A stretch of DNA of 64,000 bases from Lytechinus pictus (taxonomy: Eukaryota). A program made the translations under genes and the position numbers. Where the stretch lies: assembly GCF_037042905.1 (NCBI RefSeq), contig NC_087245.1, positions 7,998,001 through 8,062,000 on the forward strand, given 5' to 3'. The notes under the pieces were generated by a model. It did no database searches, was not told the DNA's origin, and saw only the letters and a program-made list of their open reading frames with translations. How positions within the stretch are numbered: the first letter of the stretch is position 1; each line of letters opens with the position of its first letter. This document shows positions 725 to 47,400 of this stretch, in pieces.

Positions 725-997
725 CTTCAACGATATATATTCTTGTACATTTCTTTTCCAATTCATCATCAAAGATTATTGCTACCACTTCATGTGTTCC
801 TATTGATACACTCCCTCCAACAGGATATCCTCCTAGAGTAGTATTAACCGACACAGCATCTCCGTGATATCGGTAACCATCAACAGATTTGGTGACATTG
901 TCTGCTCCAAAATCTGGTGCAAAATTGTAAGTCGCTTGATGTGGATCAGTGCTTACAGTGCGATTTAAGTCCGGACAGTTCACTGGTAGCTCGGTAA
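725..997 (-). CDS. HYR-repeat protein exon, B-type domain (B1); last exon in window, gene continues past position 1
   Basis: ttttgcag|TTACCGAG...GTTGAAG|gtaa; 273 bp, phase 1-1, open frame TELPVNCPDLNRTVSTDPHQATY...KKCTRIYIVE. Confidence 0.85.
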
Positions 998-1489
998 CTG
1001 CAAAATATTAATGACAAGAAAAATATAACTCGTTTTCCAATTAACACATTTATGTAAAATTTCCTAATATGTAAACTTAATGCCCTAATTCTATTCTCTT
1101 ACAAGCAGTATAATTAAGGTTTATGAGGGATGAAGCATAAGTTCTACATTTATTTTTTGATTTGCAACAGAACAGGAAATGCGATTGAAGTCAGGACGGT
1201 TCACCGGCAACTCGGTTATGCAAAATATTAATGACAAGAGAAATATGATGACTGGCTTCCCATTTAACAAATTTATAAGTAGACTTTCCTAATACGTAAT
1301 GTGAATTCCCATAAGTCCCTAGTATAGTCTCTTACAAGCAGTAATTAAGGTTTATGAAGTATAAAATCTACATCTAGTTTTCGATTTGCAACTGAATAAA
1401 TGATCTACCCTTATCATTATTTTATATCAGCATTCTTTATTGACTGACTAAAAAGAAACTTCAATATCTATTGGTGGCACGTCCCACAA

Positions 1490-1740
1490 GGGTCGTGTGG
1501 TCTAGTGGTAAGAGCATTGGACTCATAATCGAAAGGTTACGAGTTCGAATCCCCACTCTGCCATTGTCTCCACTTTGATAAAAAGGTCCGAGAGTATTAT
1601 CTGTCGTCTCTAAGGCCAGCCACTATGGCTGATTACGTAAAGTGTTTCCTAGGTTATTGGTTATATACCAGTTTGGCGTTTACCAGCAAAAATCTGTCCG
1701 GCCGAGTTCCTACGGGAGTTACTATAACCTACCAAGTTTT
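1490..1740 (+). mobile_element. SINE with tRNA-Met-like head
   Basis: TGGTCTAGTGGTAAGAGCA A box, CTCATAA anticodon-like loop, GAGTTCGAATCC B box; stems imperfect; followed by non-tRNA body. The 3' end is approximate. Confidence 0.55.
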
Positions 1741-1765
1741 AAATGTTATGAAGAAAAATGGATCA

Positions 1766-2839
1766 CAGGGGGGGATCCAGCTTTCGCCAATAGGGGGGGG
1801 GCCGAAAAATATTTTCATCAACATTTTTCTCTATTGGCCGCTATAATCTGTTTTTTTTTCTTTTGGTTTTTCAGGGGGTAGTCCTAACTAAAGACTGAAG
1901 TTTTAGTTTTTATTGTAATAAACAAGATAAGGTATCTCATGTCGACTTAATATAATATGCGACCGCGAAGCGCGAGCTCGAATTCTTTGATATTCTATGT
2001 CCTTAGACCTGAAGATTCTGAACAGTTGTTATATTCATGAACAAAGATAAATATCAAACTAAACAATGCGAGAGCGAAGCGCGAGCCGAAATTTTAATAT
2101 AGTAACGTGAAAAGGAACTCAATTAGGACTGTTTTAGTGATTAATGAAGAGGATACAAGTATCACCAATTAAATAATGAGTGTGCGAAGCGCGAGCTCAA
2201 AATTTTTGATATTCCGACCTGAAAACTGGACAGTCTAACTAAGCACATTTTTATTCAAATAAAGAACAAGCTTTGTCTCAAACAATTAAATGCGAGTGCG
2301 AAGCACGAGCTTAAATTTTTACTGACATAATAAAAGGGCATTTTTAGAAATTTTGGTAAGAATTCAATGGTAAGAAGAAGATAGGTATTTCACAAATCAA
2401 ACAATGCGAGCGTGCAGCTCGAGCTGAAAATTTTCATATATATTAACAATTTGTGTAAATCAAACAAAATAATGAAAGCTTGATGTGCGAGCTAAAATAT
2501 TGTGTGCAAATTGATTTCAGAACTGGATATATTAAGTGCCATTAAATCCTTTTGAATGAGATTCATTACACAGGCAATGCGAGCGCAAAGCGCGAGCGAA
2601 ATTTTTTATATGAATTCTATTTTCCAATTCTTCCCCTCACCTTTTTCTTGTTCCCTTTCGGGTCGGGCCGGCCGATACAAGGCTGTAAATCACACATCAT
2701 GGGTATAATACCTCTTTCTTACTTTTCTTTTTTTTTTAAATCGTTTCTATCAAGTTAAAGAGTACACTTTTTTCTGCAGATTGCCAAAAATATAGGGGGG
2801 AGGCGGGGCCGGCTCGGCCCCCTCCTGGATCCGCGCCTG
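1766..2839 (+). mobile_element. Non-autonomous DNA transposon (CAGGGGCGGATCCAG-type termini) with internal GCGAGCGCGAAGCGCGAGC repeats
   Basis: CAGGGGGGGATCCAG...CTGGATCCGCGCCTG, flanked on both sides by GATCA. Relatives at 32400 and 55938-56873. Confidence 0.75.
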
Positions 2840-2847
2840 GATCATTA

Positions 2848-3655
2848 GCAAAAGGGGTTGGATCAATTTTTCATCAGATTTGATTTTGTTGACCCAGTGT
2901 ATAGATTTTAATAGCTCTATAAGATGATACCAAAGAAAAGTTGAAATTCCCATTAAAAGGTGTATAAAACGTACAAAAACCGTTTTTTTTTCTTAAAAAA
3001 GGGTTGGATCACTTTCAGTTTGTTTGCAAAAGGGGCTATATCTAAGGTATTTTTTTGAAAAAGATATTTAAAAATATGAAGACAGGTAGATTTCTTTTGT
3101 ACCCAATTTTTGTTCACATGGAAGGGTAATATATTATGCTAATTTAGTTTTGCATAAGAATATTGCAATATATGAAAATAAAAAAGATTTATTTTCTTGG
3201 AATATTCTAATGTGGATCGAACCCTTTGCAAACAAACTCTTCCGAAGAGCACATTTGCAAAAGGGTTAGATCCATTTTTCATAAAATTTGATCTCTTTTT
3301 GTTTCAATGTATAAATTTTAGTCGCTCTGATGATACCAGAGAAAAGTTGAAATCCCCATTAAAAAGTAAATAAAACGTATAAAACCCTTTTTGCATAAGA
3401 AAGGTTTGGATCATTTTCAGTTTGTTTGTAAAACGGGCTAGATCTACAAAGGTAATTTTTTGAAAAATATATTAAAGAAAAGTGAAGACAGGTAAATTTC
3501 TTTTACACCCAATTTTATGTTCACATGGTAGGGTAATATATTATGACAATTTAGTTTTGCATAAGAGTATTGCAATATATGAGAATAAAAAAGCTTGATT
3601 TTCTTGGAATGGTCTAAAGTGGATCTAACCTCTTTTGCAAACAAACTCTATTTGT
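2848..3655. repeat. Two-copy ~409 bp tandem duplication
   Basis: GCAAAAGGG(G)TT(G/A)GATC...GATGATACCA(A/G)AGAAAAGTTGAAAT...GAAGACAGGTA...TTGCAAACAAACTCT recurs at 2848 and 3257. Confidence 0.8.
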
Positions 3656-3704
3656 AGGAGATATTTCAATTTGATTGTTGTGACTCGCATGACGAGACAC
3701 TATT

Positions 3705-4104
3705 GGGCGATTCCATGCTAGAAAAATCAGCTATTTTCGCAACATTTTTGCAACCTATTGTCCAAACAAACGAAGAACTTCAATTTATTTTGTGGTAATA
3801 ATAAAGTACTACTGGGTAGACATATGAAAAAATGACAACCAACAAAAATATGTTGTCCATGGATGAATTAGGGGTGAAAATATTGCGTGTCGTACAGGAC
3901 ATTTCTGAGTAACGTACGACACACAACATTTTCGCCCTTAATTCAGCCATAATCAAACATTTTTTTGTTGGTAATCTGTTTTTCACATGACTACTCACTA
4001 TAACTTTATTATTGACCAACAATAATTTTTCATTGCTCAAGCAGTCAGCTAAGAGACTATAAATTGTTGACAAAATGTCCCGTACGACACGTATGGAATC
4101 GCCC
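3705..4104. mobile_element. MITE with 12-bp TIR
   Basis: GGGCGATTCCAT...ATGGAATCGCCC, inside a region with repeated TGTGACTCGCGTGAC motifs (3679, 4271, 4606, 4640). Confidence 0.6.
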
Positions 4105-4746
4105 TACTAAAGATTCCTGGCCCCTCTGTATTTGTCTTTAATTTCCTCAGAAGATACACACCAGATATTGATAAAATTTTCTGGAGAGTATTTCGAAACA
4201 CCGGGAAATATCATCTTTAACGCCTCGGACATGATGGACTTTTGGTTTTGAGTTGATTGCCATTTGAAGATGTGACTCGCGTGACAAGTATCATTCTGGA
4301 CTATAGGTTGAACAAATTATCATGATTTTATACAGTAAGATGGGTAAAATATCATTCAAATAGAACATTTATGGTCACTTACACCCCATCTATTGTTTAA
4401 AACAAATGAATTTTAAAGCCGAGTTCTGATACATCTACTTACATGAAAGCATGTGGGACTACATAATTAATAGTCTCATATGTGTTATTAATAGCATTAA
4501 AAGTTTTTCTGAATAAAAGTAATCATTCACGCCTAAAGAAATGACATTTGCCAAAAAATCCCATTTATTATCCTTGTTTCCAAAAATATTGCTTGTTTTG
4601 TGATATGTGACTCGCGTGACATACCCTTAAAAACCTTAATGTGACCCGCGTGACAGAAGTTTAGGGAGATTTTTCGTAATGTAGGGATTTTCAGTTGGCA
4701 ATCTTCTTTGCTTGTTCGATTTAGTACCTTATATATATCTAAGTAT

Positions 4747-4779
<33 letters not shown>

Positions 4780-5523
4780 AACCCCTCAAAAAAAGTTTGG
4801 AAATCTGAGTTTTGCCATTAATTTCTCCCAACTCCCAATTTTACACAATGCATATTGATATCATTCAAAAGATCATTAAATTCTCTTTAAAATAATACCA
4901 TACTTGTTATGATCATGCCATCACGAAAAGAGCAGGATTCAAAAGTGTTGGATGAGTCTGAATTGAAAAGCTGCAAAACGAGCAGAAACAGTCATGGAGG
5001 GTCAATGAAAAACATTATTCTTTTGTCTGTGTCAAAAGAGACGAAAATTCATTCAAATCAAGCCCCTGCTTCTTCATTTTTGATGTCTTGTTGTGGTTTA
5101 TGTAGTGATGGTTCAGTGAGCTAACATGGTTTGAGCTGTGGTTTGAAATACCCATGCATGTTTGTTATGTGTTTGCTTGTGTGTGCAGAGGTATGATTGA
5201 TTCCATGTTAATGTTGATGTTAAAGGTGCATGAATACAAAATAAACTACTGAGGAACTCACTCATCGCCACGGAAAAAAACATTGACTTTCAGTATTGTG
5301 TCATTTTGCAACTTTTGACTTTTGACCTTGCCCCACATTTCAAGGCGCTGCACCTCCATGTGAACCAAAATCATATCATGTAGGGTATCATTTTAAAGAA
5401 AATTACATGATCTATTTATTGGTATCCATCACACATTAATATTCACTGATACCGGTGAGGGATCATCGAACAAAGTTAGATTTCCAAACTTGTGATCAAT
5501 ATGTGACCAATTTTAATTCTTAC

Positions 5524-5760
5524 GTGTATTCTGTACGTAGAATAAGCATTCAGCCGAGTTGTTATATTCATCGACAGCAAACATTGTTACTGCCGTGTAT
5601 CCAGGAGCGAGAGGTGCACCTTCTGTGACGTCATAAGTTACATTTGGGTAAGGACTAGCATCATAATAGGTATACATATCATTGGTCAATCCATGAAAGG
5701 TGTTTGGTGAATCGTTAGGGAGTGTTACATTGGAACACGTCACAATAGGAGGATCAGTGT
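5524..5760 (-). CDS. HYR exon, A-type (A1)
   Basis: ctttacag|ACACTGAT...AATACAC|gtaag; 237 bp, phase 1-1; DTDPPIVTC...PGYTAVTMFAVDEYNNSAECLFYV fits the HYR pattern D..PP...C...G.T.VT..A.D...N...C.F.V. Confidence 0.88.
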
Positions 5761-5829
5761 CTGTAAAGAAAATGGGAGTAAAACGAATCATGTTAACGTT
5801 ACTTTTTTAATCGATATGTAAGGTAAATC

Positions 5830-6251
5830 ATTAATAATCATTATTTTTACATGATGCGCTTGATGTACGTAGGCGCTTATCAATTTATTATTACCCCTGT
5901 CATCGGATTCAATTAGTAATTCCCGCATATGTACATCCTCTACTCTTTGGGGTTTATTATCATGGAGCGCCACGTGTAAGCCCTGTAATAAAACACCGGT
6001 AACTTCTTATTTTGTTACAAAAACAATCGACAGTTATTTTTTTTTTTCACAAAATCAATCGACGGCGCACGCAATTATGAACAAGCTACAATAAATTTCA
6101 CATCATTGCGGCTATCCACTTAGCCCCTGGGTGGAGAGTGGCAAAGTGTGGATTGATACCTTGCCAAATGACGTTTTATAGGCCGCGGTGGGATTCGAAC
6201 ACACGGACCTATGATTACAAGGCGAGAATCAGTATATACCACGGTTCTTCC
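5830..6251 (-). mobile_element. Degenerate tRNA-derived SINE in each array unit (also ~8300-8712, 10783-11192, 13251-13664, 15737-16149)
   Basis: Minus-strand GGAAGAACCGTGG...GTTCGAATCCCACCGCGG head; aligns by eye to the stand-alone copy at 26731-27082 plus an extra ~80 bp internal segment. Confidence 0.8.
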
Positions 6252-7143
6252 ACTTCTAATTATTAAGAATAACAGTAATTCTAAATCTCCCCTAAACATA
6301 TTTAATTGATTCAAATCGAAACCAAACCATAGTCAATTCATAATTAATTATAAACAAACTAATACAAGTCTGCTAAAAAAATCTTGCGCCAGAGTGAAAT
6401 ACATTCAATTCATCAAGATCTTCTATCAATAAAGATGATTTTTCATGATGAAATTATTCTTTCATCTAAATGAAGCACCTGCCATATGTATATACCGAAA
6501 GGCAGGAGTATATAAGTTTCAGAAATTCGCTTATTTAGAACAATGTCTTAATTAAATCGTTAGCTTAGAGTATACCAGAATACCAGAATTCAGTAAATAA
6601 AGAAACCTCTGTACAATGTTCCTTCTTTCAGCTCAATCCGTACCATATTTATCCCCAGATTTAATGTCATATCAAGCAAATGTGTAGAAATATGAAGATT
6701 AATCTTGAAACAATATGAAAATCTATACCTTTAAAACGTGACACTATGGTGATATATGGATATGGATATATGGTCTGATATATGGATGCAAAGTTGAATC
6801 CTCTTTGCTCAGTGCGTACCAAAAAAAAAATATATATTATGTCTCTCCAGGACAAATAAGAGATCTTTGTTACATTCATTTAAATAAAAATGGTCTGTGA
6901 GATATCTTCCTTAGTATCAGGGAAAATTAAGTAAATAAGTAAGGTTACCCTTTTGTATTAGTTGATAGCTTTTCTATTATTAGACTATGAAAAAAAACAA
7001 AATCAATAATCATGAGATTTCGAATTAAACAAATGTCAAAAAACGTGATTACTGTCTCAGGCACCATTTAGTCAGGATTCAATCTTTACACACACGTGAA
7101 TATAATTATTTATGAAGGTGATGTAACAATAAAATCATATTAC

Positions 7144-7416
7144 CTTCAACAGTATATATTCCTGTACATTTCTTTTCCAATTCATCATCAAAGATTATTG
7201 CTATCACTCCATGTGTTCCTATTGATACACTCCCTCCAACAGGGAATCTTCCTAGAGTAATATTAACAGACACAGCATCTCCGTGATATCGGTAACCATC
7301 AACAGATTTGGTGACATTGTCTGCTCCAAAATCTGGCGTAAAATTGTAAGTCGCTTGATGTGGATCAGTGCGTACAGTGCGATTTAAGTCCGGACAGTTC
7401 ACTGGTAGCTCGGTAA
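7144..7416 (-). CDS. HYR exon, B-type (B2)
   Basis: ttttgcag|TTACC...GAAG|gtaa, 273 bp, phase 1-1, open frame. Confidence 0.87.
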
Positions 7417-7994
7417 CTGCAAAATATTAATGACAAGAAAAATATAACTCGCTTCCCATTTAACACATTTATGTAGACTTTCCTAATGTGTAAACTTAAT
7501 TCCCTTATTCTATTCTCTTACAATCAGTAATTAAGGTTTATGAGGGATGAAGCAAAAGTTCTATATTTAGTTTCGATGTGCAACAAAACAGGAAATGCGA
7601 TTCAAGTCCGGATGGTTCACCGGCAACTCGGTTACGGCAAAATATTAATGACAAGAAAATATGATAACTCGCTTTCCATTTAACATATTTAAAAATAGAC
7701 TTTCCTAATATGTAAACTTATTTCCCTTAAGTCCCTGTCATATTCTCTTACAAGCAGTTTTCCATTCAAAAAATGAAATGCATACCTACTGAAAATGCAT
7801 ACATGGAAGGGGTTCTTCTTGAGACAGTGCACTTTGTGTAAAAGGAAAATTAATCCTCGCGACTAACAATAAAATACCTCGAATATATTTATTTCACCAT
7901 GGAGGAACGAGTAAGCTAGTTGGATAAGGATGTTCATGCAATGTTCATTTCTAAATCAGATTCTAAAAGAGATGTAACCAATGGCACTACCTAC

Positions 7995-8231
7995 GTGTGT
8001 TCTGTACGTAGAATAAGCATTCAGCCGAGTTGTTGTATTCATCGACAGCAAACATCGTTACTGCCGTGTATCCAGGAGCGAGAGGTGCACCTTCTGTGAC
8101 GTCATAAGTTACATTTGGGTAAGGACTAGCATCATAATAGGTATACATATCATTGGTCAATCCATGAAAGGTGTTTGGTGAATCGTTAGGGAGTGTTACG
8201 TTGGAACACGTCACAATAGGAGGATCAGTGT
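7995..8231 (-). CDS. HYR exon, A-type (A2)
   Basis: tttacag|ACACTG...ACAC|gtaggt, 237 bp, phase 1-1. Confidence 0.87.
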
Positions 8232-9623
8232 CTGTAAAGAAAATGGGGATAAAACGAATCATGTTATTGTTACTTTTTTACTCGATATGTAAGGTAAATC
8301 ATTAATAATAATTTGGCATGATGCCCTTGATGTACGTAGGCGCTTATCAATTCATTATTACCCCTGTCATCGGATTCAATTAGTAATTCCCGCATATGCA
8401 CATCCTCTACTCTTTGGGATTTATTATATGGAGCGCCAAGTGTAAGCCCTGTGATAAAACACCTGTAACTTCTTATTTTGTTACAAAAACAATCGACAGT
8501 TATGGTTTTTTTCACAAAATCAATCGACGGCGCACACAATTATGGACAAGCTACAATCAATTTCACACCATTGCGGCTATCCAATTAGCCTGGGTGGAGA
8601 GGGCAAAGTGTGGATTGATGCCTTGCCAAATGACGTTTTATAGGCCGCGGTGGGATTCGAACACACGGACCTATGATTACAAGGCGAGAATCAGTATACA
8701 CCACGGTTCTTTCACTTCTAATTATTAAGAATAACAGTAATTCTAAATCTCCCCTAAACATATTTAATTGATTCAAATCGAAACCAAACCATAGTCAATT
8801 CATAATTAATTATAAACAAACTAATACAAGTCTGCTAAAAAAAATATTGCGCCAGAGTGAAATACATTCAATTCATCAAGATCTTTTATCAATAAAGATG
8901 ATTTTTCATGATGAAATTATTCTTTCATCTAAATGAAGCACCTGCGATATGTATGTACCGAAAGGCAGGAGTATATAAGTTTCAGAAATTCGCTTATTTA
9001 GAACAATATCTTAATTAAATCGTTAGATTAGAGTATACCAGAATACCAGAATTCAGTAAATAAAGAAACCTCTGTACAATATTCCTTCTTTCAGCTCAAT
9101 CCGTACCATATTTATCCCCAGATTTAATGTCATATCAAGCAAATGTGTAGAAATATGAAGATTTATCTTGAAACAATATGAAAATCTATACCTTTAAAAC
9201 GTGACACTGCGGTGATATTTGATCTGTGTCATATATGGATATGGATATATGGTCTGATATATGGATGCAAAGTTGAATCCTCTTTGCTCAGTGCGTACCA
9301 AAAAAAAAATATATATTATGTCTCTCCAGGACAAATAAGAGATCTTTGTTACATTCATTTGAATAAAAATGGTCTGTGAGACATCTTCTTTAGTATAAGG
9401 GAAAATTAAGTAAATAAGTAAGGTTACCCTTTTTTATTAGTTGATAGCTTTTCTATTATTAGACTATGAAAAAAACAAAATCAATAATCATGAGATTTCG
9501 AATTAAACAAATGAAAAAAAAATCGGGATTACTGTCTCCGGCACCATTTAGTCAGGATTCAATCTTTACACACACGTGAATATAATTATTTATGAAGGTG
9601 ATGTAACAATAAAATCATATTAC

Positions 9624-9896
9624 CTTCAACAGTATATATTCCTGTACATTTCTTTTCCAATTCATCATCAAAGATTATTGCTATCACTCCATGTGTTCCT
9701 ATTGATACACTCCCTCCAACAGGGAATCTTCCTAGAGTAATATTAACAGACACAGCATCTCCGTGATATCGGTAACCATCAACAGATTTGGTGACATTGT
9801 CTGCTCCAAAATCTGGCGTAAAATTGTAAGTCGCTTGATGTGGACCAGTGCGTACAGTGCGATTTAAGTCCGGACAGTTCACTGGTAGCTCGGTAA
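9624..9896 (-). CDS. HYR exon, B-type (B3)
   Basis: Same splice signals, 273 bp, open frame. Confidence 0.87.
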
Positions 9897-10477
9897 CTGC
9901 AAAATATTAATGACAAGAAAAATTTGATTAGTCGCTTCCCATTTAACACATTTATGTAGACTTTCCTAATGTGTAAACTTAATTCCCTTATTCTATTCTC
10001 TTACAATCAGTAATTAAGGTTTATGAGGGATGAAGCAAAAGTTCTATATTTAGTTTCGATTTGCAACAAAACAGGAAATGCGATTCAAGTCCGGATGGTT
10101 CACCGGCAACTCGGTTACGGCAAAATATTAATGACAAAAAAATATGATAACTCGCTCTCCATTTAACATATTTATAAGTAGACTTTCCTAATATGCAAAC
10201 TTATTTCCCTTAAGTCCCTATCATATTCTCTTACAAGCAGTTTTCCATTCAAAAAATGAAATGCATACCTACTGAAAATGCATACATGGAAGGGGTTCTT
10301 CTTGAGACAGTGCACTTTGTGTAAAAGGAAAATTAATCCTCGCGACTAACAATAAAAGACCTCGAATATATTTATTTCACCATGGAGGAACGGGTAAGCT
10401 AGTTGGATAAGGATGTTCATGCAATGTTCATTTCTAAATCAGATTCTAAAAGAGATGTAACCAATGGCACTACCTAC

Positions 10478-10714
10478 GTGTATTCTGTACGTAGAATAAG
10501 CATTCAGCCGAGTTGTTATATTCATCGACAGCAAACATTGATACTGCCGTGTATCCAGGAGCGAGAGGTGCACCTTCTGTGACGTCATAAGTTACATTTG
10601 GGTAAGGACTAGCATCATAATAGGTATACATATCATTGGTCAATCCATGAAAGGTGTTTGGTGAATCGTTAGGGAGTGTTACATTGGAACACGTCACAAT
10701 AGGAGGATCAGTGT
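10478..10714 (-). CDS. HYR exon, A-type (A3)
   Basis: Same splice signals, 237 bp, open frame. Confidence 0.87.
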
Positions 10715-12092
10715 CTGTAAAGAAAATGGGAATAAAACGAATCATGTTAACATTACTTTTTTACTCGATATGTAAGGTAAATCATTAATAATAATTTGGC
10801 ATGATGCCCTTGATGTACGTTGGCGCTTATCAATTCATTATTACCCCTGTCATCGGATTCAATTAGTAATTCCTGCATATGCACATCCTCTACTCTTTGG
10901 GATTTATTATATGGAGCGCTAAGTGTAAGCCCTGTGATGTAACTTCTTATTTTGTTACAAAAACAATCGACAGTTATTATTTTTTTTCACAAAATCAAAA
11001 AATCAATCGACGGCGCACACAATTATGGACAAGCTACAATCAATTTCACACCATTGCGGCTATCTTCTTAGCCTGGGTGGAGAGGGCAAATTGTGGATTG
11101 ATGCCTTGCCAAAGGACGTTAGGCTGCGGTGGGATTCGAACACACGGACCTATGATTACAAGGCGAGAATCAGTATACACCACGGTTCTTCCACTTCTAA
11201 TTATTATGAATACCAGTAATTCTAAATCTCCCCTAAACATATTTAATCGATTCCAATCGAAACCAAACCATAGTCAATTGATAATTAATTATAAACAAAC
11301 TAATACAAGTCTGCTAAAAAAAATCTTGCGCCAGAGTGAAATACATTCAATTCATCAAGATCTTCTATCAATAAAGATGATTTTTCATGATGAAATTATT
11401 CTTTCATCTAAATGAAGCACCTGTGATATGTATATACCGAAAGGCAGGAGTATATAAGTTTCAGAAATTCGCTTATTTAGAACAATATCTTAATTAAATC
11501 GTTAGATTAGAGTATACCAGAATACCAGAATTCAGTAAATAAAGAAACCTCTGCACAATCTTCCTTCTTTCAGCTCAATCCGTACCTTATTTATCTCCAG
11601 ATTTAATGTCATATCAAGCAAATGTGTAGAAATATGAAGATTTATCTTGAAACAATATGAAAATCTATACCTTTAAAACGTGACACTATGGTGATATTGG
11701 ATTTGTGTGATATATGGATATGGATATATGGTCTGATATATGGATGCAAAGTTGAATCCTCTTTGCTCAGTGCGTACCAAAAAAAAATATATGTCTCTCC
11801 AGGACAAATAAGAGATCTTTGTTACATTCATTTGAATAAAAAGGGTCTGTGTGACATCTTCCTCAGTATCAGGGAAAATTAAGTAAATAAGTAAGGTTAC
11901 GCTTTTGTATTAGTTGATAGCTTTCCTATTATTAGACTATGAAAAAAAAAATCAATAATCATGAGATTTCGAATTAAAGAAATTAAAAAAAACGTGATTA
12001 CTGTCTTCGGCACTATTTGGTCAGGATTCAATCTTTACACGCACGTGAATATAATTATTTATGAAGGTGATGTAACAATAAAATCATATTAC

Positions 12093-12365
12093 CTTCAACA
12101 GTATATATTCCTGTACATTTCTTTTCCAATTCATCATCAAAGATTATTGCTTTCACTCCATGTGTTCCTATTGATACACTCCCTCCAACAGGGAATCCTC
12201 CTAGAGTAATATTAACAGACACAGCATCTCCGTGATATCGGTAACCATCAACAGATTTGGTGACATTGTCTGCTCCAAAATCTGGCGTAAAATTGTAAGT
12301 CGCTTGATGTGGATCAGTGCGTACAGTGCGATTTAAGTCCGGACAGTTCACTGGTAGCTCGGTAA
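12093..12365 (-). CDS. HYR exon, B-type (B4)
   Basis: Same splice signals, 273 bp, open frame. Confidence 0.87.
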
Positions 12366-12945
12366 CTGCAAAATATTAATGACAAGAAAAATATTATTAG
12401 TCGCTTCCCATTTAACACATTTATGTAGACTTTCCTAATGTGTAAACTTAATTCCCTTATTCGATTATCTTACAATCAGTAATTACGGTTTATGAGGGAT
12501 GAAGCAAAAGTTCTATATTTAGTTTCGATTTGCAACAAAACAGGAAATGCGATTCAAGTCCGGATGGTTCACCGGCAACTCGGTTACTGCAAGATATTAA
12601 TGACAAGAAAATATGATAACTCGCTTTCCATTTAACAAATTTATAAGTAGACTTTCCTGATATGTAAACTTAATTCCCCTAAGTCCCTATTCTGTTATCT
12701 TACAAGCAGTTTTTCATTCCAAAAATGAAATGTATACCTTATGAAAATGCATACATGGAAGGGTTCTTCTTGATACAGTGCACTTTGTGTAAAAGGGAAA
12801 TTAATCCTCGCGACTAACGATAAAAGACCTCGAATATATTTATTTCACCATGGAGGAACGGGTAAGCTAGTTGGATAAGGATGTTCATGCAATGTTCATT
12901 TCTAAATCAGATTCTAAAAGAGATGTAACCAATGGCACTACCTAC

Positions 12946-13182
12946 GTGTATTCTGTACGTAGAATAAGCATTCAGCCGAGTTGTTATATTCATCGACAGC
13001 AAACATTGTTACTGCCGTGTATCCAGGAGCGAGAGGTGCACCTTCTGTGACGTCATAAGTTACATTTGGGTACGGACTAGCATCATAATAGGTATACATA
13101 TCATTGGTCAATCCATGAAAGGTGTTTGGTGAATCGTTAGGGAGTGTTGCGTTGGAACACGTCACAATAGGAGGATCAGTGT
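12946..13182 (-). CDS. HYR exon, A-type (A4)
   Basis: Same splice signals, 237 bp, open frame. Confidence 0.87.
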
Positions 13183-14576
13183 CTGTAAAGAAAATGGGAA
13201 TAAAACGAATCATGTTAACGTTACTTTTTTAATCGATATGTAAGGTAAATCATTAATAATAGTTTGGCATGATGCCCTTGATGTACGTAGGCGCTTATCT
13301 ATTCATTATTACCCCTGTCATCGGATTCAATTAGTAATTCCCGCATATGCACATCCTCTACTCTTTGGGATTTATTATATGGAGCGCCAAGTGTAAGCCC
13401 TGTGATAAAACACCTGTAACTTCTTATTTTGTTACAAAAACAATCGACAGTTATGATATTTTTTCACAAAATCAATCGACGGCACACATAATCATGGACA
13501 AGCTCTAATCAATTTCACATCATTGCGGCTATCCACTTAGCCCCTGGGTGGAGAGTGGCAAAGTGTAGATTGATGCCTTGCCAAAGGACGTTAGGCCGCG
13601 GTGGGATTCGAACACATGGACCTCTGATTACAGGGCGAGAATCAGTATACACCACGGTTCTTCCACTTCTAATTATTAAGAATAACAGTAATTCTAAATC
13701 TCACCTAAACATATTTAATTGAATGAAATCGAAACCAAACCATAGTCAATTGATAATTAATTATCAATTATCAAACTAATACAAGTCTGCTAAAAAAATA
13801 TCGCGCCAGAGTGAAATACATTCAATTCATCAAGATCATCTACTGATCAATAAAGATGATTTTTCACGATGAAATTATTCTTTCATCTAAATGAAGCACC
13901 TGCGATGTGCATATACCGAAAGGCAGGAGTATATAAGTTTTAGAAATTCGCTTATACAATAAAGTCAGCAAAAAAATAGATCAATATGTTAATTAAATTA
14001 TTAGATTAGAGTATACCAGAATTCAGTAAATGAAGAAACCTCTGCACAATCTTCCTTCTTTCAGCTCAATCCGTACCTTATTTATCTCCAGATTTAATGT
14101 CATATCAAGCAAATGTGTAGAAATATGAAGATTTATCTTGAAACAATATGAAAATATATACCTTTAAAACGTGACACTATGGTGATATTGGATTTGTGTG
14201 ATATATGGATATATGGTCTGATATATGGATGCAAAGTTGAATCCTCTTTGCTCAGTGCGTACCAAAAAAAAATATATGTCTCTCCAGGACAAATAAGAGA
14301 TCTTTGTTACATTCATTTGAATAAAAAGGGTCTGCGTGACATCTTCTTCAGTATCAGGGAAAATTAAGTAAATAAGTAAGGTTACCCTTTTGTATTAGTT
14401 GATAGCTTTCCTATTATTAGACTATGAAAAAAAAATCAATAATCATGAGATTTTGAATTAAACAAATAAAAAAAAACGTGATTACTGTCTTCGGCACTAT
14501 TTGGTCAGGATTCAATCTTTACACACACGTGAATATAATTATTTATGAAGGTGATGTAACAATAAAATCATATTAC

Positions 14577-14849
14577 CTTCAACAGTATATATTCCTGTAC
14601 ATTTCTTTTCCAATTCATCATCAAAGATTATTGCTATCACTCCATGTGTTCCTATTGATACACTCCCTCCAACAGGGAATCCTCCTAGAGTAATATTAAC
14701 AGACACAGCATCTCCGTGATATCGGTAACCATCAACAGATTTGGTGACATTGTCTGCTCCAAAATCTGGCGTAAAATTGTAAGTCGCTTGATGTGGATTA
14801 GTGCGTACAGTGCGATTTAAGTCCGGACAGTTCACTGGTAGCTCGGTAA
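14577..14849 (-). CDS. HYR exon, B-type (B5)
   Basis: Same splice signals, 273 bp, open frame. Confidence 0.87.
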
Positions 14850-15429
14850 CTGCAAAATATTAATGACAAGAAAAATATGATTAGTCGCTTCCCATTTAAC
14901 ACATTCATGTAGACTTTCCTAATGTGTAAACTTAATTCCCTTATTCGATTCTCTTACAATCAGTAATTAAGGTTTGTGAGGGATGAAGCAAAAGTTCTAT
15001 ATTTAGTTTCGATGTGCAACAAAACAGGAAATGCGATTCAAGTCCGGATGGTTCACCGGCAACTCGGTTACGGCAAAATATTAATGACAAGAAATATGAT
15101 AACTCGCTTTCCATTTAACAAATTTATAAGTAGACTTTCCTGATATGTAAACTTAATTCCCCTAAGTCCCTATTCTGTTATCTTACAAGCAGTTTTTCAC
15201 TCAAAAAATGAAATGTATACCTAATGAAAATGCATACATGGAAGGGGTTCTTCTTGATACAGTGCACTTTGTGTAAAAGGAAAATTAATCCTCGCGACTA
15301 ACAATAAAAGACCTCGAATATATTTATTTCACCATGGAGGAACGGGTAAGCTAGTTGGATAAGGATGTTCATGCAATGTTCATTTCTAAATCAGATTCTA
15401 AAAGAGATGTAACCAATGGCACTACCTAC

Positions 15430-15666
15430 GTGTGTTCTGTACGTAGAATAAGCATTCAGCCGAGTTGTTATATTCATCGACAGCAAACATTGTTACTGCC
15501 GTGTATCCAGGAGCGAGAGGTGCACCTTCTGTGACGTCATAAGTTACATTTGGGTAAGGACTAGCATCATAATAGGTATACATATCATTGGTCAATCCAT
15601 GAAAGGTGTTTGGTGAATCGTTAGGGAGTGTTGCGTTGGAACACGTCACAATAGGAGGATCAGTGT
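15430..15666 (-). CDS. HYR exon, A-type (A5)
   Basis: Same splice signals, 237 bp, open frame. Confidence 0.87.
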
Positions 15667-17006: not shown

Positions 17007-17279
17007 CTTCAACAGTATATATTCCTGTACATTTCTTTTCCAATTCATCATCGAAGATTGTTGCTACCACTTCATGTGTTCCTATTGATACACTCCCTCC
17101 AACAGGATATCCTCCTAGAGTAATATTAACCGACACAGCATCTCCGTGATATCGGTAACCAGAGGAAGATTTGGTGACACTGTCTGCTCCAAAATCAGGC
17201 GTAAAACTGTAGATCGCCTGACCTGGATCAGTGCTTACAGTGCGATTTAAGTCAGGACAGTCCACTGGTAGCTCGGTAA
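17007..17279 (-). CDS. HYR exon, B'-type (B6)
   Basis: ctttcag|TTACC...GAAG|gtaa, 273 bp; TELPVDCPDLNRTVSTDPGQAIYSF... Confidence 0.87.
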
Positions 17280-22881: not shown

Positions 22882-22912
<31 letters not shown>

Positions 22913-26699: not shown

Positions 26700-26730
26700 T
26701 TCTATTAATACTAGTAGATGCTTAAAAACG

Positions 26731-29973: not shown

Positions 29974-30031
<58 letters not shown>

Positions 30032-36369: not shown

Positions 36370-39351
36370 TTTCCCATTTAGAGAAATGGATTGTAAGAGT
36401 CCCCCTCTTTGTTGATATATTCTTTTCTTCTCTTTCCCCCAATACTATTTTTTATTTCATTCAATGAAGGAGGTTTTTTTAATTCTCGGTTTTTGTAAAT
36501 AAGATATTTAACTAAAATCAAGACATGATTAATTAATGGATATTTACCTTTACTTTTCTCCTCCTTCCCGAAAAGAATTTCCTGCCAACTAAATTTATTT
36601 ATTTCAAAATTTAAACTTCTTGCACACAGATCCCAAAGTGATTTTGAAAATTCACAAGTATAAAATAGATGTTCATACGTTCCTTCTTCCTTTTGACAAA
36701 ATGAGCATAAATTGGTCGAAACAAGACCAAACGGAAAAGGTGGTGGTAAGTGTATACAATATTATGCAAGAGTTTATACTGAAAATCCCTTAATCGACTA
36801 TTCAGTGTGCAATATCTTAGTCTTAAAAATATACTTTCTATTTCCTTATTGGTAAGATCATAATTCGTTCTAATTTTGTCGAAAATAGAAGGTTTAATTT
36901 CATTTTTATTCAACAGCTGTTCGTATATTTCTTGTGATTTTAAAACATTAAATTAGTTGTTTTCTTACCCAAATTGAAATCGATTCCAAAGTTATGCTTT
37001 GCATTTATTTCGATATTGTTCTTCCAACTTACGGGTAAACAGGCATATATATGCTTGATCTTTTCAACATCATTTGCATCTAAATTCAAATTAAGAAAAT
37101 GTGTATCACATTTTAGTTTACCATTATTATCCAAAATATGATGCAATTTATAAACCTCTTTATCGTATAGAATCTTATCAAATATACAACTCCCTTTATA
37201 TCAAATAAGCTTATTATTAAAAATCACCACTTTCCCAAACTCTGTACTTCTAATATGTCTTATATTTACCCACTCTTCTAATAAGTCCATGTAAAATTTT
37301 GAAGCTGTTACTTTCAATAAACCTGGTATATAGTCACATGAAAATATCAAATCTCCACCCAAATGTTTAGTGGCAAAATTAAAGTACTGTTTCCATTTCA
37401 TATCTTCATCTTTACTTAAAAGTCTTTTAATCCACATCATTCGCTGTGCCTTTACCTGCACAGGGAGGTTTAACATCTCTAATCCTCCTTGCTTATAGTC
37501 TAAAACATTGTATTCCTATTAATTTTGTCTTTCTTACCTTTCCATAAGAAATCAAAAGTTAATTCATCCAATGATTCATAAACCCACTTAGGAACAGGAG
37601 TAAGAGACGCTCGATAGAGGACTTTAGAATAGATATGCACCTTTGATAGTTGAATCTTCCCCATAAGCGTTATATCCCTTAGCTTCCAAAAGTTCAAGAG
37701 TGTTTTAATTTTGCTTAAGATTTCTTTGTAATTTAGATCTTCTTTCTTATGTTCATCTAGGGTGAAAAATACTCCTAAAGCTTTAAGAAAAGGAGAAGTC
37801 AAATTCCAAATGCTGACATGAACCTAATTTTAATACTTTAGTTTTGTCATTATTGATTTTTAATCCAGAAAGTTTTTCAAAATCTGCAAATAAAACTTTT
37901 AGTCTATCAACTGATTTTACATTACGAGCAAAAACTGTCATATCATCTGCATAAAGTGCTAATTTAATTTCTTTATCTCCAAATTTAATTCCTTCAATCG
38001 GATTATCTTTCGTAATTTATGAGCCATTACTTCAATACACAAAATAAATCGGTAAGGACTAAGAGGATCCCCTTGCCTCACCCCCTTTTTATTTCAAAAT
38101 AACCAGTGGAATTTCCTTCATTTAAAACACAACTTAGAGTGTCAGTATTCCATCTGTGGTTTTTCTTTTATTACTTTGCATCAACTGGTTGAAATAACGC
38201 GAGTCTCTTTCACCACATACCAGGAGGCACGAGATCGAACCTTAACACCTTCATTAACATAACTATAGATTTCCCTTAATTTCTCTTTTGTATTTTTTAG
38301 TTTTTCTAAAGTATTTGCATCAGTACGATCTTTCAATTGTTCTTCTAAAAACTGTATATCTCTTTCTTAATCCGTTTTCATTATCCTTCTTTTATCAGCC
38401 AATTTTTTCGAAAATTTTTGTGTAAAACTTCGAATGTTCATTTTTAGAAAATCCCATAACAACCTCTTATCTTTTATTTCAGATTGCAATTCATTTCTCA
38501 ATTCACGAATTTCTTTCTTTAATTCTTTAACATAATCTTCATTTTCACATAAACTATTATTAAATTTCCAATATGACCTCTTCCTTCCATTAACTTTATT
38601 TTTTGTTTTGTCGAATAAGTGTACAAAAATTGAATGATGATCAGGGGCCACAGATGGAATTATATCGCACTTTATAACCATTTCCTCTAAACATTCAGAA
38701 ATTATCCAGTAATCAAGTCTGCTTTGCATGAAGGGGTTCTTTTGCATGTATGTAAATTGTCTTTTCAGGGGATGTCTACATCTCCAAACGTCAAAAAATT
38801 GGAAGTCTTCCATAAATTTTCAAAAGTCTCGATTGAATCTATTTGAAATCCTATTTAGAGATTGTCCGTTATAATCTAAATTATTGTCCCTAATCATGTT
38901 AAAATCACCACCTATTATAACAGGGTATTTATCTTTATTCAACTTAGCAAGGGTATTTCGTATTTTTTTGAGAAATTGCAATTGTTCATTTTCAAAATTT
39001 CTTGTAGGAAATATACATTTCCTAAAATCAACCTAACCCCTTGAAACTTAAATCTATAAATAGAAATCTACCCTCATTGTCTCTTAAGACTTGTAATATC
39101 TCCATATCTACCGTTGGCGCAATTAAAACTAATATACCCTTGCTATGAGCTGAACCATGACTAAAATAACTGATGCCGTCCCACGACGAATCCCATCTAT
39201 CCTCACATTCCCTAGTACTAAAGGTTTCTTGCAAAAAGACAATATCGGCCCCTTTATCTTTACACCAAAAAAAGATACGGTCTCTTTTATCACTATCTCT
39301 AATTCCTTTCACATTGAGGGATATCAATTTACAACTAATCTGGAGACTCAT
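36370..39351 (-). pseudogene. LINE ORF2 (AP endonuclease + reverse transcriptase), frameshifted and internally deleted
   Basis: ISLNVKGIRD, VFLQETFS, GGDFN, SRLDYW, PDHH, WKFNNSL; GVRQGDPLSP, LYADD, LGV; RDFQYKLLHNI. Confidence 0.92.
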
Positions 39352-43599: not shown

Positions 43600-44376
43600 A
43601 TCACCTAAGGGAACGAACTTACTATCGATATACAGCTTTCTTGGTTCTGCTCATGAGAAGTATGCTCTCTTTCCGGCTGTCTTAGCCGCATGAAGCAGTG
43701 GGAATTGGGGTTTTCTAGCCTCCCGGACAGCTTTTGGAAGATCATCCGTTATTACATACTTGGTGCCTTTAAGATTCTTCGCATTTCTCATAATCTTTTC
43801 TTTATCTGGATAACGCAGCATCCTTGCTTTAATCGGACGAGGTCATCGTGGAGCCGGACATCGGTGGACTCGCTGAAACTCTACTCCTCGAATATCATCC
43901 TCGTTCATCTTCAATTTCTCCTTCATAAAATCTCTTACCACCTTTTGCGTATCCTCTCGTTCAGCTGGGCCTCCTTCTTCTGCTATCCCCCAAAACACAA
44001 TGTTTTCTCGTGCGGCGTAAACACTCAGCTTTTCCAGCTCCATCGTCAAATTCTCAAACTTTTCCTTGAAGTTTTTTTCTACCTGGGGTATGGTCTCCCT
44101 AGTAATTTTCTCCGTCACGTTGGCGTTGTAGGCTACCGATGTAATTAATTCCGTTGACTTCGTTTCCATTTCCATTTTACGAGACATTGTGTTACGAATC
44201 TGGTTTTCCGTATTTTTCTCAAGTCTATCTAGCCTTTCTTGCGTCTGTATGAAATGGTCGTTCATCAGCTGCTTGAGAGATTCAGTCTCTTCATACTCAT
44301 GCCTTGGCCCAGCGGCCCTTGCAGCCTGGCTACCGGGGCTAGAGGACGGCTTCTTTCGCTTGTCTCGGTTCGACAT
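43600..44376 (-). pseudogene. LINE ORF1 (coiled coil + RRM-like), disrupted
   Basis: RENIVFWGIAEE...EDT...VRDFM...EFQRVHR...*PRPIKARMLRY...ITDDLPKAVREAR...LYID, typical of L1-type ORF1p. Confidence 0.85.
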
Positions 44377-45960
44377 TGCAGGTGCTAGCGGGTAAACTCA
44401 ATCTACGCAAAGTCAATACAAAATCAGGAGAGGGTCCGCATACGTGCTCACTTGTTAAAAGTCATGCGATCGGATGATTATGATGATCGGAGCTTGATTA
44501 TGCCCATCGATTGCATTGGCCGCTTGTCTATAGGTAAACTTTGAGCATATCTTAGAAACAGTTCAGGTCATGAAATGAATCTTTTTCAGCAACGTCCATG
44601 GTAATTCTCACTTTATTTGGTACGCGAACAGTAAAGATGAATAACGATACATATCTAACATTGATCATACCGTTGTAAACAGAGTTATTTCTTAGCAAAT
44701 AGTGCTTAATTACTTTTTAAAGAAAATCCTTATGTAATCGATTACAAACGATTACTGAATTTCCTTATACGATGATATACATGGATTAAAACTATTCTAC
44801 GCTCTTCACCGTCCCGAAAGTATGCTGAAAATTAGATAAACCTTTCGTTTGTTACAATATATATATATATATATGTATATCATATATATATATTACTGGC
44901 GTAAATCCGGTCCGAGCAGGAGGGGGTTGATAGCAATATATTGACCTAAAAATTCAAAATTTGGGGGACACCCCCACACCAAGGGCTGTGTATACGGGGT
45001 TATATAACCGTGAACATATACTATAATCTTTCAGTTAAAGGCTATAATGATTTTTTCAATGGCTAAATTGTATTGGATTCGTTGTGATTAAAGTAATAAA
45101 GCGAGCGAGAAAATTTTCAGTAATTGAAACTTGAAGGATATAATGGTATCCAAAAACCTGTTTTCAAATGGTGTGAATCACATCAGGAGCAAAATATACG
45201 TAAGTAGAATCTATACTGTAAATGCTTGATTTTTTCAATTGCTATATTGTAATGTATTTGTTGGTATATTTAAGTAATGAATTATAGTAAATATCACTAA
45301 GCGAGCGAAACAAGCGAGCAAATTTTTAAAGTTGAAAGACCAAATGATGACCAAAATCTTCTTTCAATGTGTGTGTAATTATTAGATAAATGCAGCGAGT
45401 GAGCGTAGTGAGCTAGCCTTCAGTCGTTTAAAAAGATATACTTATATTACAGAGGATGATACATGTAACGGTAGTTTATCAGAATCATAAACTTAAAAGA
45501 AATATATAAGAAGGGAAGAAATATAGAGAGAAAATGAGGATTAAACTGTCCAGATTTTGTTCAATGAAGGCGTTTATATCTCTATTTGTCACTTTTCACC
45601 CTGACCACCTAGGTGTTGTAAATGGGCACTGGTATTTCATTGAATGCTCGAGGGTCTGATCAAGGTAGCCGTGCATGCTCAATCATGGGTTTTTTAAAAT
45701 GTGCAGCGCTGAGAATAATGTGTATTTCCATGTATTGCTTTTTTTTTTCTCAAGAAAATGTGGTTTTTCAATGGACAACCATTTTGCCATTTAAACGCAT
45801 AGATCTACCCATTTTAAGAAGAATGATATTCAAATTCAAATTATTTTGGGGTGCGCTGTTATCCCACTTTGATCAAATTGTTTGTCTTGTTAATGTAAAT
45901 CATATGAAACTTATTTCTACATTAGGGATTACACATTGCTACAGATTAAAAAGGATCCGT

Positions 45961-46123
45961 ATACCATGGTCATATTTGTTCTACGGCGGCCGTACGGCGA
46001 GTCGAAAACAGCCGTTTTAACATTTTTTTTCAAACTACATATAGGTGGTTTGAATCAAAATTAATAAAACGGCTGTATTCGACTCGCCGTACGGCCGCCG
46101 TAGAACAAATGTGACCATGGTAT
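45961..46123. mobile_element. ~160 bp palindromic MITE
   Basis: ATACCATGGTCATATTTGTTCTACGGCGGCCGTACGGCGAGTCGAAAACAGCCGTTTTA with a near-perfect inverted copy. Confidence 0.85.
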
Positions 46124-46163
46124 AAGCACTACTTGATCTTCCAAGAGATAAAAATCAACGTAC

Positions 46164-46245
46164 CTGAGTCAACTAACGAGGCGAGAAGCAACACTAGCAT
46201 GCATTGCGCAATCCGTAGTCTTAAGCTATGTCGGTGGTCCACCAT
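46164..46245 (-). CDS. First coding exon (signal peptide) of the HYR-repeat gene; exon spans 46164-46255
   Basis: ccaatcag|GCAACAAACCATGG (strong Kozak); MVDHRHSLRLRIAQCMLVLLLASLVDS then G|gtacgt phase-1 donor, compatible with all HYR exons. The link to the HYR exons is inferred. Confidence 0.72.
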
Positions 46246-47153
46246 GGTTTGTTGCCTGATTGGAGATATAACAAAATAAATCACTAAATAACTGTCAGTC
46301 CTCAAATAGGTCATGGGAAAGGTTAAGAAACAGATGATGTCTATTAAGAACCCCCCTCCCCCCCCCCCCCAAAAAAAAAAGTAGCTCTTCAATTCGATGT
46401 AAACATGGAAGGGAATTTTCTTATAGACTTCATTCTCTCTAATATCTTCATTTAGAATTTATTCATGGTATCAATAATACAAGAAGATAGTATAATTCGA
46501 AGAAGAATTTTTTTTTTTAATCACAAAAAAACATATGCATGAGACAGGGTTGTGGTCGCCGCCAGCCCTCAAGGATTCTATTAAGTGCTCGGTAAAAAAA
46601 GTGGGGAAAGAGGAGAAAGAAGAAGCAAAAGGAAGAAAGGAGAAAGAATGCTCCTGTAACACTTAAATACACGTATTAATCAAAATGAAAATGACGTCGT
46701 ATTAGGTCGTCCCCCACCCCCTATCAAAATACCCGGGCGCCATCCGTGATATAAATGTTTACTAGCTTGGTCACACTGGCAGATTAATATTCACTAATTA
46801 GATCCCCGTGAAGAACAGCTATTTTCAGATGAAAATGGCTATCCAGCCTATTAATGGTCAATAAATCATATCAATTTAAAAGCAGAAACATTGTTTTCAC
46901 TTCCTTGAACATACACACAGAATTGAAAAGGTCGGAATCTAATCCATTGTATATGCCTAACACACAACTTATCCCATGTCATGTTCAATATAATATACTG
47001 GACGCAAAGCTCATCATTTGGGGAGCAAAGAAAGCCAAAGATAATATTCGACACAAACATTGCTAAGAGATGTCCTGAATACATCGCATTCATTGATGAA
47101 AAAATTATTTATTCCGATGTTGCAACGTGTTCCACAAAACCTTTTCTTATTAC

Positions 47154-47269
47154 CTTCTGTTAATCTGCTGTGCAGCCTTGTCGAAATAGCACATCGAGAC
47201 TAAAAGTACACCTGTGTGTCATTTAACTACTCGCACAGCTATCTATATTATTCGCTCACCCGAAAGAAT
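47154..47269 (-). other. Candidate non-coding exon 1 (5' UTR)
   Basis: Begins at Inr-like GCATTCT 29 nt after TATATAA; ends at CAGAAG|gtaata. Confidence 0.5.
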
Positions 47270-47400
47270 GCAAGCATGGTAAGTTTAATTATTATATATG
47301 AATTCCGGGTACCCCTCCGTGGGTGTTGTGCAGAACAACAGGAGGGTTGGGATTGTGACGTCATGAGCATGATGAGTGGTTTGAACTTTGTCGCACGTCA
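47265..47400 (-). promoter_or_regulatory. Candidate core promoter: TATA box, Inr and CRE
   Basis: TATATAA 47298-47292 (minus), Inr A at 47269, palindromic TGACGTCA 47356-47363, half-site TGACGTG 47400-47394. Confidence 0.55.

Follow-up and report, generated by a model that had tools for sequence, protein, structure and literature searches.

Locus, exon chain and existing annotation

We analysed a stretch of 64,000 nucleotides from the sea urchin Lytechinus pictus (chromosome CM073226.1, positions 7,998,001-8,062,000, assembly GCA_037042905.1; hereafter the "window", numbered along its forward strand), the minus strand of which carries a 14-exon gene for a protein built of HYR domains. The genomic locus as fetched matches the window's reverse complement exactly. 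Six-frame open reading frames (ORFs) show two alternating sorts of open frame of about 90 residues between 648 and 20120, from which exon boundaries were read and then fixed by script, yielding 14 exons from 20086 to 725 with lengths of 237, 264, 267 or 273 nt, all multiples of three. Every exon is preceded by a polypyrimidine tract and AG, followed by GTAAG, GTAGG or GTAAT, and has phase 1-1, so that joining any two of them leaves the reading frame intact. The exons encode three types of domain, termed here A, B and C, in the order C-B-C-B-A-B-A-B-A-B-A-B-A-B. The codon split by the intron encodes Leu at every A-to-B junction and Asp at every B-to-A junction. A tblastn search of the whole window revealed no HYR-type exon beyond these 14.

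The chain, all on the minus strand, starts with two C-B pairs, namely exon 1 (C-type HYR, 264 nt, 19823-20086; 29.5 bits with the Pfam HYR model PF02494, which has a gathering score of 21.7 bits), exon 2 (B-type, 273 nt, 19145-19417), exon 3 (C-type HYR, 267 nt, 17685-17951; 26.7 bits) and exon 4 (B-type, 17007-17279). Then follow the A-type exons 5 (A-type HYR, 237 nt, 15430-15666, the first of a young array described below), 7 (12946-13182), 9 (10478-10714), 11 (7995-8231; 20.5 bits, E 6e-4, just under the cut-off) and 13 (5524-5760, the last young copy), which alternate with the B-type exons 6 (14577-14849), 8 (12093-12365), 10 (9624-9896) and 12 (7144-7416). The chain ends with exon 14 (725-997), a terminal B-type exon of an older lineage, which ends IYIVE like the last B of Lytechinus variegatus. 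The spliced chain of 3,627 nt contains no stops and comprises 1,208 complete codons plus split ends. Its product is acidic (isoelectric point 4.17; 147 Asp and Glu versus 48 Lys and Arg), carries 48 N-x-S/T sequons (3.4 per domain), and has two cysteines per domain, or four in the C type. An earlier note on this DNA, made from the sequence alone, had described 14 intact single-domain phase 1-1 exons with strict alternation of A/C and B in an acidic protein with several sequons per domain, and all of this stands; the start that it gave, 725, is the last base of the last B exon.

The chain agrees residue for residue with the RefSeq protein XP_063951643.1 (LOC129254729, "partial", uncharacterised, 1,236 aa), which is longer by 3 residues at its start, read from the intron upstream of exon 1, and by 25 residues after exon 14 that result from reading through into the intron. 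This read-through occupies 648-724 on the minus strand and provides the C-terminal 25 residues and the stop of LOC129254729. In its current form the model lacks a start codon and bears a 5' partial flag. LOC129254729 is thus a real gene of a familiar kind, already annotated by machine and uncharacterised. The earlier note had not recognised a named gene here, and the full-length match is indeed to a model that is annotated and carries no characterisation; a literature search by six locus names (the gene and its relatives) found no mention of them.

The B-type domain is related to HYR by fold

The young A exons score 20.3-20.5 bits (E 6e-4) with the Pfam HYR model, close below the gathering score that both C-type exons exceed. 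The B exons gave no match to this model, and just 5 of 38 B-type relatives reach E-values of 0.003-0.1. Comparison with hhalign of a B profile (38 sequences) and an A/HYR profile (29 sequences) was not significant (probability 2.5%, E 0.018, 30 columns), and shallower alignments gave the same outcome; it is therefore only the fold and the context that relate B to HYR. Searches of PDB chain sequences with the A and B profiles returned nothing meaningful.

AlphaFold2, supplied with an alignment of 31 natural A-B pairs, folded the A+B pair with high confidence (predicted local distance difference test score, pLDDT, 93.6; predicted template modelling score 0.81), and the B domain on its own reached a pLDDT of 92.7. 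In AFDB/Swiss-Prot the best matches of the B model were the HYR domains of SRPX2 and SRPX (template modelling score, TM-score, of 0.53-0.59 by query, over the whole domain), followed by hyalin; bacterial HYR proteins too are among the nearest folds of B. A shape search of the ESM Atlas returned HYR clusters (TM-score 0.60-0.69, root mean square deviation 2.2-2.7 A), and language-model features likewise pointed to HYR. The model of the A+B pair could be superposed along its full 169 residues on tandem HYR-HYR segments from many HYR proteins. Solved structures matched by the models are generic Ig-like, PKD and cadherin-like sandwiches (Z up to 6.4), and none among the listed matches is named HYR. 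A conserved cysteine is located near each end of both domains (C8 and C71 in A, C86 and C162 in B, in the numbering of the pair), and these residues are invariant or nearly so in the 31 A-B pairs. Two disulphides and a constant angle between the domains are predicted for the pair. Judged by its predicted structure, B has the HYR fold and has diverged beyond the reach of the Pfam model, and each of the A, C and B exons codes for a single beta-sandwich of this fold that contains one conserved pair of cysteines. The proposal of the earlier note that B is a divergent HYR domain, for which it had suggested modelling of an A-B pair as a check, is borne out by this confident model, in which HYR is the nearest fold.

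A young tandem array of A-B units

A repeat search revealed a young tandem array at 5500-17006 (minus strand), composed of a 2.48 kb unit of one A exon and one B exon, with four full units and one extra A exon. Tandem Repeats Finder missed this array because its longest period is 500, and a search for longer periods recovered it. The start-to-start spacing is 2,469-2,484 bp across the four to five young units and 2,138 bp between the two older C-B units. The young units are 2,430-2,484 bp long and differ pairwise by 2.8-6.1% over their whole length. Their exons diverge by 0.4-2.1% and their introns by 2-9%, with the intron stretches that flank the exons as uniform as the exons themselves, so the lower divergence of the exons is explained equally well by gene conversion or recent duplication. 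All 4 changes among the four young B copies are non-synonymous, and the variable sites of the young A exons comprise 4 synonymous and 3 non-synonymous ones, counts that are too small for a test of selection. Older pairs of B domains have ratios of non-synonymous to synonymous substitution rates (dN/dS) of 0.3-0.8. Within the gene, the A/C-type domains are only about 50% identical to each other, compared with 86-90% for their partner B domains.

Homology among the young units ends a short way past exon 13, and exon 14 follows after an intron of 4.5 kb, as opposed to the standard 0.58 kb. Within this intron, homology to the standard A-to-B intron is confined to the final 345 bp, which indicates that exon 14 belongs to an older terminal unit.

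Other details of the introns may be recorded here. About 4.2 kb of unrelated DNA (1343-5523) replaces the 5' part of the exon 13-14 intron and marks the downstream edge of the young array; it contains a 400 bp direct repeat (2843-3240 and 3252-3649, 84% identical) and a 250 bp palindrome (3782-4028). In the five A-B units, each A-to-B intron has a partial copy, about 105 bp long, of the boundary between intron and B exon, situated approximately 220 bp upstream of the B exon (minus strand, 7597-7700, 10080-10183, 12549-12650, 15033-15135 and 1181-1290). These copies include the first 12 codons of the B exon (T-E-L-P-V-N...), and their acceptor AG is changed to CG, which makes them disarmed decoy acceptors. 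The two C-B units lack them.

Relatives and distribution of the A-B cassette

A phmmer search with a single B exon (exon 12) against 1.84 billion representative sequences yielded 33 significant matches. All strong matches that carry a species name come from sea urchins (Strongylocentrotus purpuratus, Lytechinus and Diadema); the others are ORFs from contigs (ENA/Logan) and a few weak matches in long proteins from environmental contigs that resemble ordinary multi-HYR proteins. In every echinoid relative in which both domains were detected, A directly precedes B, and the linker between them (N-x-L-T-E-L-P-V-x-C-P) is short and nearly invariant in the 31 A-B pairs. Alternation of A and B is found in models from S. 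purpuratus, L. variegatus and two Diadema species, and the presence of the pair in Diadema indicates that the cassette is common to distantly related sea urchins. Besides arrays, the cassette occurs in other contexts. In Lytechinus it heads a ZP-domain protein (P0013), SUSD2-like proteins with AMOP, vWD and sushi domains (P0047, P0048) and a membrane protein with a weak, sub-threshold match to Pfam Ig_ILCR1 (P0010); it is present also in small proteins composed of a signal peptide, A, B, HYR and a transmembrane helix (P0003, P0009). The A-B cassette is therefore a shuffled module and not a repeat unit alone. The earlier note had regarded the A-B di-domain as the unit of evolution, which agrees both with the genomic tandem unit of this locus and with the fixed order of A and B in the echinoid relatives.

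In a tree of B domains the sequences group by genus: Lytechinus forms one clade (support 100/99), the array copies of S. purpuratus a second, and Diadema a third, so that each lineage built and expanded its arrays, or else homogenised them, on its own. The tree places the terminal B of L. pictus and the only B of L. variegatus together in an unresolved group. Copy number differs also between assemblies of L. pictus. The older RefSeq model XP_054749220.1 has three C-B and three A-B units, compared with two C-B and five A-B units in the window. Its third C domain has no equal in the window (best match 66 of 75 residues identical), so that the two assemblies differ by real sequence and not by collapse alone.

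A probable membrane anchor encoded downstream of the window

In S. purpuratus the protein XP_030829885.1 (P0034) includes a whole A-B array, and its last B is followed by a HYR domain, a B-like domain (B'), SEA, EGF, a transmembrane helix and a cytoplasmic tail. A search with this tail recovered LOC129254719 of L. pictus and LOC121432183 of L. variegatus. LOC129254719, on the same chromosome and the same strand as the array, comprises B', SEA (46.4 bits with Pfam, cut-off 26.4), EGF, a hydrophobic segment of 27 residues (252-278) as transmembrane helix, and the tail. In LOC121432183 the last B is followed by HYR-B'-SEA-EGF and a transmembrane helix.

We found that a HYR exon not called in the annotation lies 14.1 kb downstream of exon 14 (L001:9768-10001; CM073226.1 7,984,584-7,984,351). 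It is 234 nt long, has phase 1-1, reads CAG|AT...A|GTGAGT at its borders and matches Pfam HYR with 27.2 bits, above the cut-off. Its last base (CM073226.1 7,984,351) is the first base of the coding range of LOC129254719. The annotated Met of LOC129254719 is a codon, A|TG, split across the junction with the HYR exon, so the 5' end of this model is truncated. When exon 14 is spliced to the HYR exon, the junction reads IVE-D-DQPPN, and the following one reads IQ-M-TELP, both as in L. variegatus LOC121432183. The 14.1 kb between exon 14 and the HYR exon contain retrotransposon fragments only, with no gene called. From phase, synteny and the models of the other species we infer that the SEA-EGF-transmembrane module is linked to the array. 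The concatenated frame, from the candidate signal peptide described below to the tail, is open for 1,690 aa, and all phases fit. That the C-terminus lies outside the window had been pointed out in the earlier note, and the HYR exon together with LOC129254719, which begin 14.1 kb away, would supply it; the suggestion of a cell-surface protein gains support from the same in-phase exons for HYR-B'-SEA-EGF, transmembrane helix and tail.

The SEA domain contains the motif F-R-P-G-S-V-I-A, of which the G-S-V-I site resembles the self-cleaving site of MUC1-type SEA domains. The cytoplasmic tail has a motif common to Lytechinus and Strongylocentrotus, L-F-x-x-Y-K-S-R-E/Q-Q-R-R ... R-D-T-Y-Y (P0055, P0054, P0036). 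The L. pictus tail model ends differently (...VGVLIYQE), perhaps via a mis-called last exon. The first 170 residues of S. purpuratus XP_030829885.1 are unrelated to the family and contain no signal peptide; they resemble a fused piece of another, possibly transposon-derived, gene, and the model is probably chimeric.

A candidate signal-peptide exon

Scanning the minus strand upstream of exon 1 for an ATG followed by a hydrophobic core and a phase-1 GT donor gave a single strong result, a candidate signal-peptide exon of 27 codons plus 1 nt at 46164-46245 (minus strand). It begins MVDHRHSLRLR, continues with a hydrophobic core and ends LVDS followed by the single G; its start context is ACCATGG, its donor CAG|GTACGT, and small residues occupy positions -3 and -1. 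The final G together with AC of exon 1 encodes Asp, so that the predicted mature end would be D-C-T-N-D-S-D-P-P. In several relatives a signal peptide directly precedes the first A-type domain, and some read QDCTTDTTPP after it; four of them (P0014, P0015, P0020, P0047) have D/T-C-T-x-D between the signal peptide and a conserved PP, and exon 1 starts alike. A shuffle test revealed weak order-specific similarity of the candidate to the signal peptide of S. purpuratus LOC589903, a gene that shares its scaffold with the arrays of that species (z 3.6; p 0.007 before correction for 9 tests). The earlier note had counted about 1236 codons for a signal-peptide exon plus the chain; the candidate and the chain together give about this number.

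Other places yielded no such exon. Nothing convincing was found near 47,000-47,700, the ORFs just upstream of exon 1 contain no signal-peptide exon, and tblastn with the signal peptides of eight relatives produced only noise. The start MAAKDDR (about 22,200) of the older RefSeq model was rejected, as it belongs to a small amino-acid repeat, is followed by no signal peptide, would depend on a weak donor and is absent from the current release. The DNA of this older start (21700-22260, minus strand) encodes K-M-A-A-I-L-K-F in short tandem copies.

Comparison with known systems

The closest counterparts of the L. pictus gene are S. purpuratus LOC105439738 (the gene of XP_030829885.1) and LOC105439979, and L. 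variegatus LOC121432183, which show the same A-B alternation, linker and junction residues and the same HYR-B'-SEA-EGF-transmembrane-tail ending, with B domains 71-76% identical to those of L. pictus. They are probable orthologues or co-orthologues, which differ in that copy number and repeat sequences are lineage-specific. Hyalin, the adhesion protein of the hyaline layer in which HYR was founded, is likewise an echinoid extracellular protein with tandem HYR-fold domains, but it is a secreted matrix protein with canonical HYR repeats and no A/B alternation, and as a structural match of B it is weak (TM-score 0.47-0.49, E 0.06-0.19). We rejected orthology with hyalin: the nearest named relatives are uncharacterised LOC genes, and the label "hyalin-like" that relatives bear is an automatic name. 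SRPX2 and SRPX, the best structural matches of B, share only 14-22% identity with it and possess a single HYR among sushi domains, with no array.

Membrane-tethered mucins (of the MUC1 and MUC3/12/13/17 type) have a long, glycosylated, repetitive ectodomain, a SEA-EGF-transmembrane segment and a short tail. The L. pictus model resembles them in having a glycosylated repeat ectodomain on SEA with a G-S-[VI]-[VI] site, EGF, a single transmembrane helix and a short tail. It differs in that its repeats are folded HYR domains with N-x-S/T sequons rather than Pro/Thr/Ser-rich, O-glycosylated sequence, and no Pro/Thr/Ser-rich region was found in the 1,690-aa model.

EBR1 of Mesocentrotus franciscanus comprises species-specific CUB-TSP1 exon-repeat arrays made of near-identical tandem multi-exon units, the copy number of which is disputed between cDNA and assemblies (PMC13672419). 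It shares with the present locus the occurrence of such units within one gene for an echinoid extracellular protein, but it has other domains and is a secreted ADAMTS-like protein with a documented sperm-binding role. Sp-Ebr1_5 (SPU_006534), "egg bindin receptor 1-5", has a transmembrane helix, SEA and seven HYR domains, and is reported as 5th among 1,008 strongylocentrotid genes under positive selection, which acts on codons of the HYR domains (Kober & Pogson 2017, PMC5521101). By description it is of the same architecture class as the L. pictus protein; its name derives from similarity to EBR1 and not from a binding experiment.

Interpretation and alternatives

The explanation that we favour, and consider probable, is that a single gene, of which the window contains the 5' two-thirds, encodes a type I membrane glycoprotein of about 1,690 residues, and that RefSeq has split this gene into LOC129254729 (the array, 5' partial and with a read-through end) and LOC129254719 (B'-SEA-EGF-transmembrane-tail), leaving the HYR exon between them uncalled. 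The order of the protein would be signal peptide, two C-B pairs, five A-B pairs, a canonical HYR domain, B', SEA, EGF, a transmembrane helix and, on the cytoplasmic side, a tail of about 100 residues. Given exons of phase 1-1 and A+B units embedded in 2.48 kb of repeated DNA, unequal crossing-over would add or remove whole domain pairs with the frame kept, and the length of the ectodomain would change between lineages and apparently between L. pictus assemblies. Such an acidic, heavily N-glycosylated protein may serve as a rod-like stalk or a multivalent adhesion array on the cell surface. If its G-S-V-I site is cleaved as in MUC1-type proteins, the array may be attached by non-covalent contacts and thus be released from the cell; a link to the cell interior could be provided by the conserved tail, the motif of which hints at an intracellular partner.

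Several points weigh against this explanation. It requires three junctions that are predicted, namely those between the signal-peptide exon and exon 1 (26 kb), between exon 14 and the HYR exon (14.1 kb), and between the array and the anchor. The signal-peptide exon, suggested by sequence features and one weak similarity, is absent from RefSeq, and BLASTP gave no alignment between the candidate and the S. purpuratus signal peptide. The difference in copy number could be one between assemblies rather than alleles, and exon-specific constraint on the young copies cannot be shown. Finally, the array model closes in both RefSeq releases with an identical stretch of 25 read-through residues and the stop at 648, which could reflect a real short, secreted isoform. 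On such a view the array would be a separate gene, in which intronic polyadenylation after exon 14 yields a secreted, unanchored hyalin-like HYR matrix protein with LOC129254719 as a mere neighbour, or else both isoforms would be made; the AATAAA motifs within 200 nt after the read-through stop and the large distance to the next exon are in its favour. We nevertheless regard it as unlikely, since LOC129254719, which has no signal peptide and starts at a codon split across the upstream HYR-exon junction, needs upstream coding exons, which would be those of the array, as no gene is called between; moreover, in the models of L. variegatus and S. purpuratus the B array and the anchor form one protein, with the same residues at the junctions, and all phases fit.

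Another alternative accepts the same anchored protein and assigns it a main role in recognition, as a fast-evolving receptor surface of variable copy number for sperm or microbes, like EBR1. Positive selection within the HYR domains of Sp-Ebr1_5 (PMC5521101), the low identity of A/C-type domains (about 50%) next to that of their partners B (86-90%) and the differences of arrays between lineages and assemblies agree with it, but dN/dS of the older B copies is 0.3-0.8 and not above 1, the young copies have too few changes, and Sp-Ebr1_5 is at most a possible orthologue; such a role seems to us rather improbable. Of comparably doubtful standing is a more specific conjecture, in which the A-B array is not a passive stalk but a length-polymorphic, fast-evolving recognition surface, for instance an egg-coat or epithelial receptor for sperm or microbes, individuals differ in the number of pairs and in their variants, and cleavage of SEA sheds a decoy or signals via the tail; the protein would then resemble EBR1 as a system, with a HYR pair peculiar to sea urchins as its building block. 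That the array is no working gene at all, but a decaying duplicate or a tandem repeat inflated in assembly, we consider very improbable. The young units are nearly identical, as in regions where assemblers err, no start codon is annotated, and constraint on the young copies is not demonstrable; yet the open frame, both cysteines, the sequons and canonical splice sites are intact in every one of the 14 exons, the older B copies have dN/dS below 1, and gene models from S. purpuratus, L. variegatus and two Diadema species have this architecture too. The units furthermore differ by 3-6% with private substitutions, which identifies them as distinct copies.

Two RefSeq models of L. pictus, a genetic model species, are probably halves of a single anchored protein of 1,690 aa. 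An exon chain read from the letters alone independently reproduces the machine annotation. New here are this probable merger of models, the recognition of B as a cryptic HYR domain, the A-B cassette seen in sea urchins only, and a copy number that varies with lineage and assembly. The locus shows clearly how duplication of an exon pair, neutral for the reading frame, alters the length of a protein; its arrays differ between two assemblies of one species, and Lytechinus, Strongylocentrotus and Diadema apparently each built their own. The annotation of echinoderm genomes would gain from a family in the style of Pfam that covers the A-B cassette, and the positive selection reported in Sp-Ebr1_5, of the same architecture, suggests that the family deserves a study of expression and binding. 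Repeat arrays of this kind are common in extracellular proteins of sea urchins, and the current understanding of them is not overturned.

Transposon remains in the putative first intron

The putative first intron of 26 kb (20087-46163, minus strand) is filled with the remains of transposons. No HYR exons were found in it by tblastn, and no other gene is called over 20094-30093. A remnant of a Tc1/mariner transposase is encoded in two overlapping frames on the plus strand (27879-28857; HTH_Tnp_Tc3_2 72 bits, DDE_3 59 bits). A run of minus-strand ORFs at 36600-39351 and 43843-44376 resembles a degraded non-LTR (long terminal repeat) retrotransposon; within it, 39028-39351 (minus strand) appears to be a fragment of the endonuclease of a long interspersed nuclear element (Exo_endo_phos 18.8 bits, below the cut-off of 24.5), and 38367-38813 and 37500-37802 gave no relevant Pfam match. 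The ORF at 43843-44376 encodes a 177-aa coiled-coil protein that may be ORF1-like, for which Pfam gave no support. Immediately downstream of the candidate signal-peptide exon lies a near-perfect palindrome of 166 bp (45960-46124, 89%), which may be an insertion similar to miniature inverted-repeat transposable elements.

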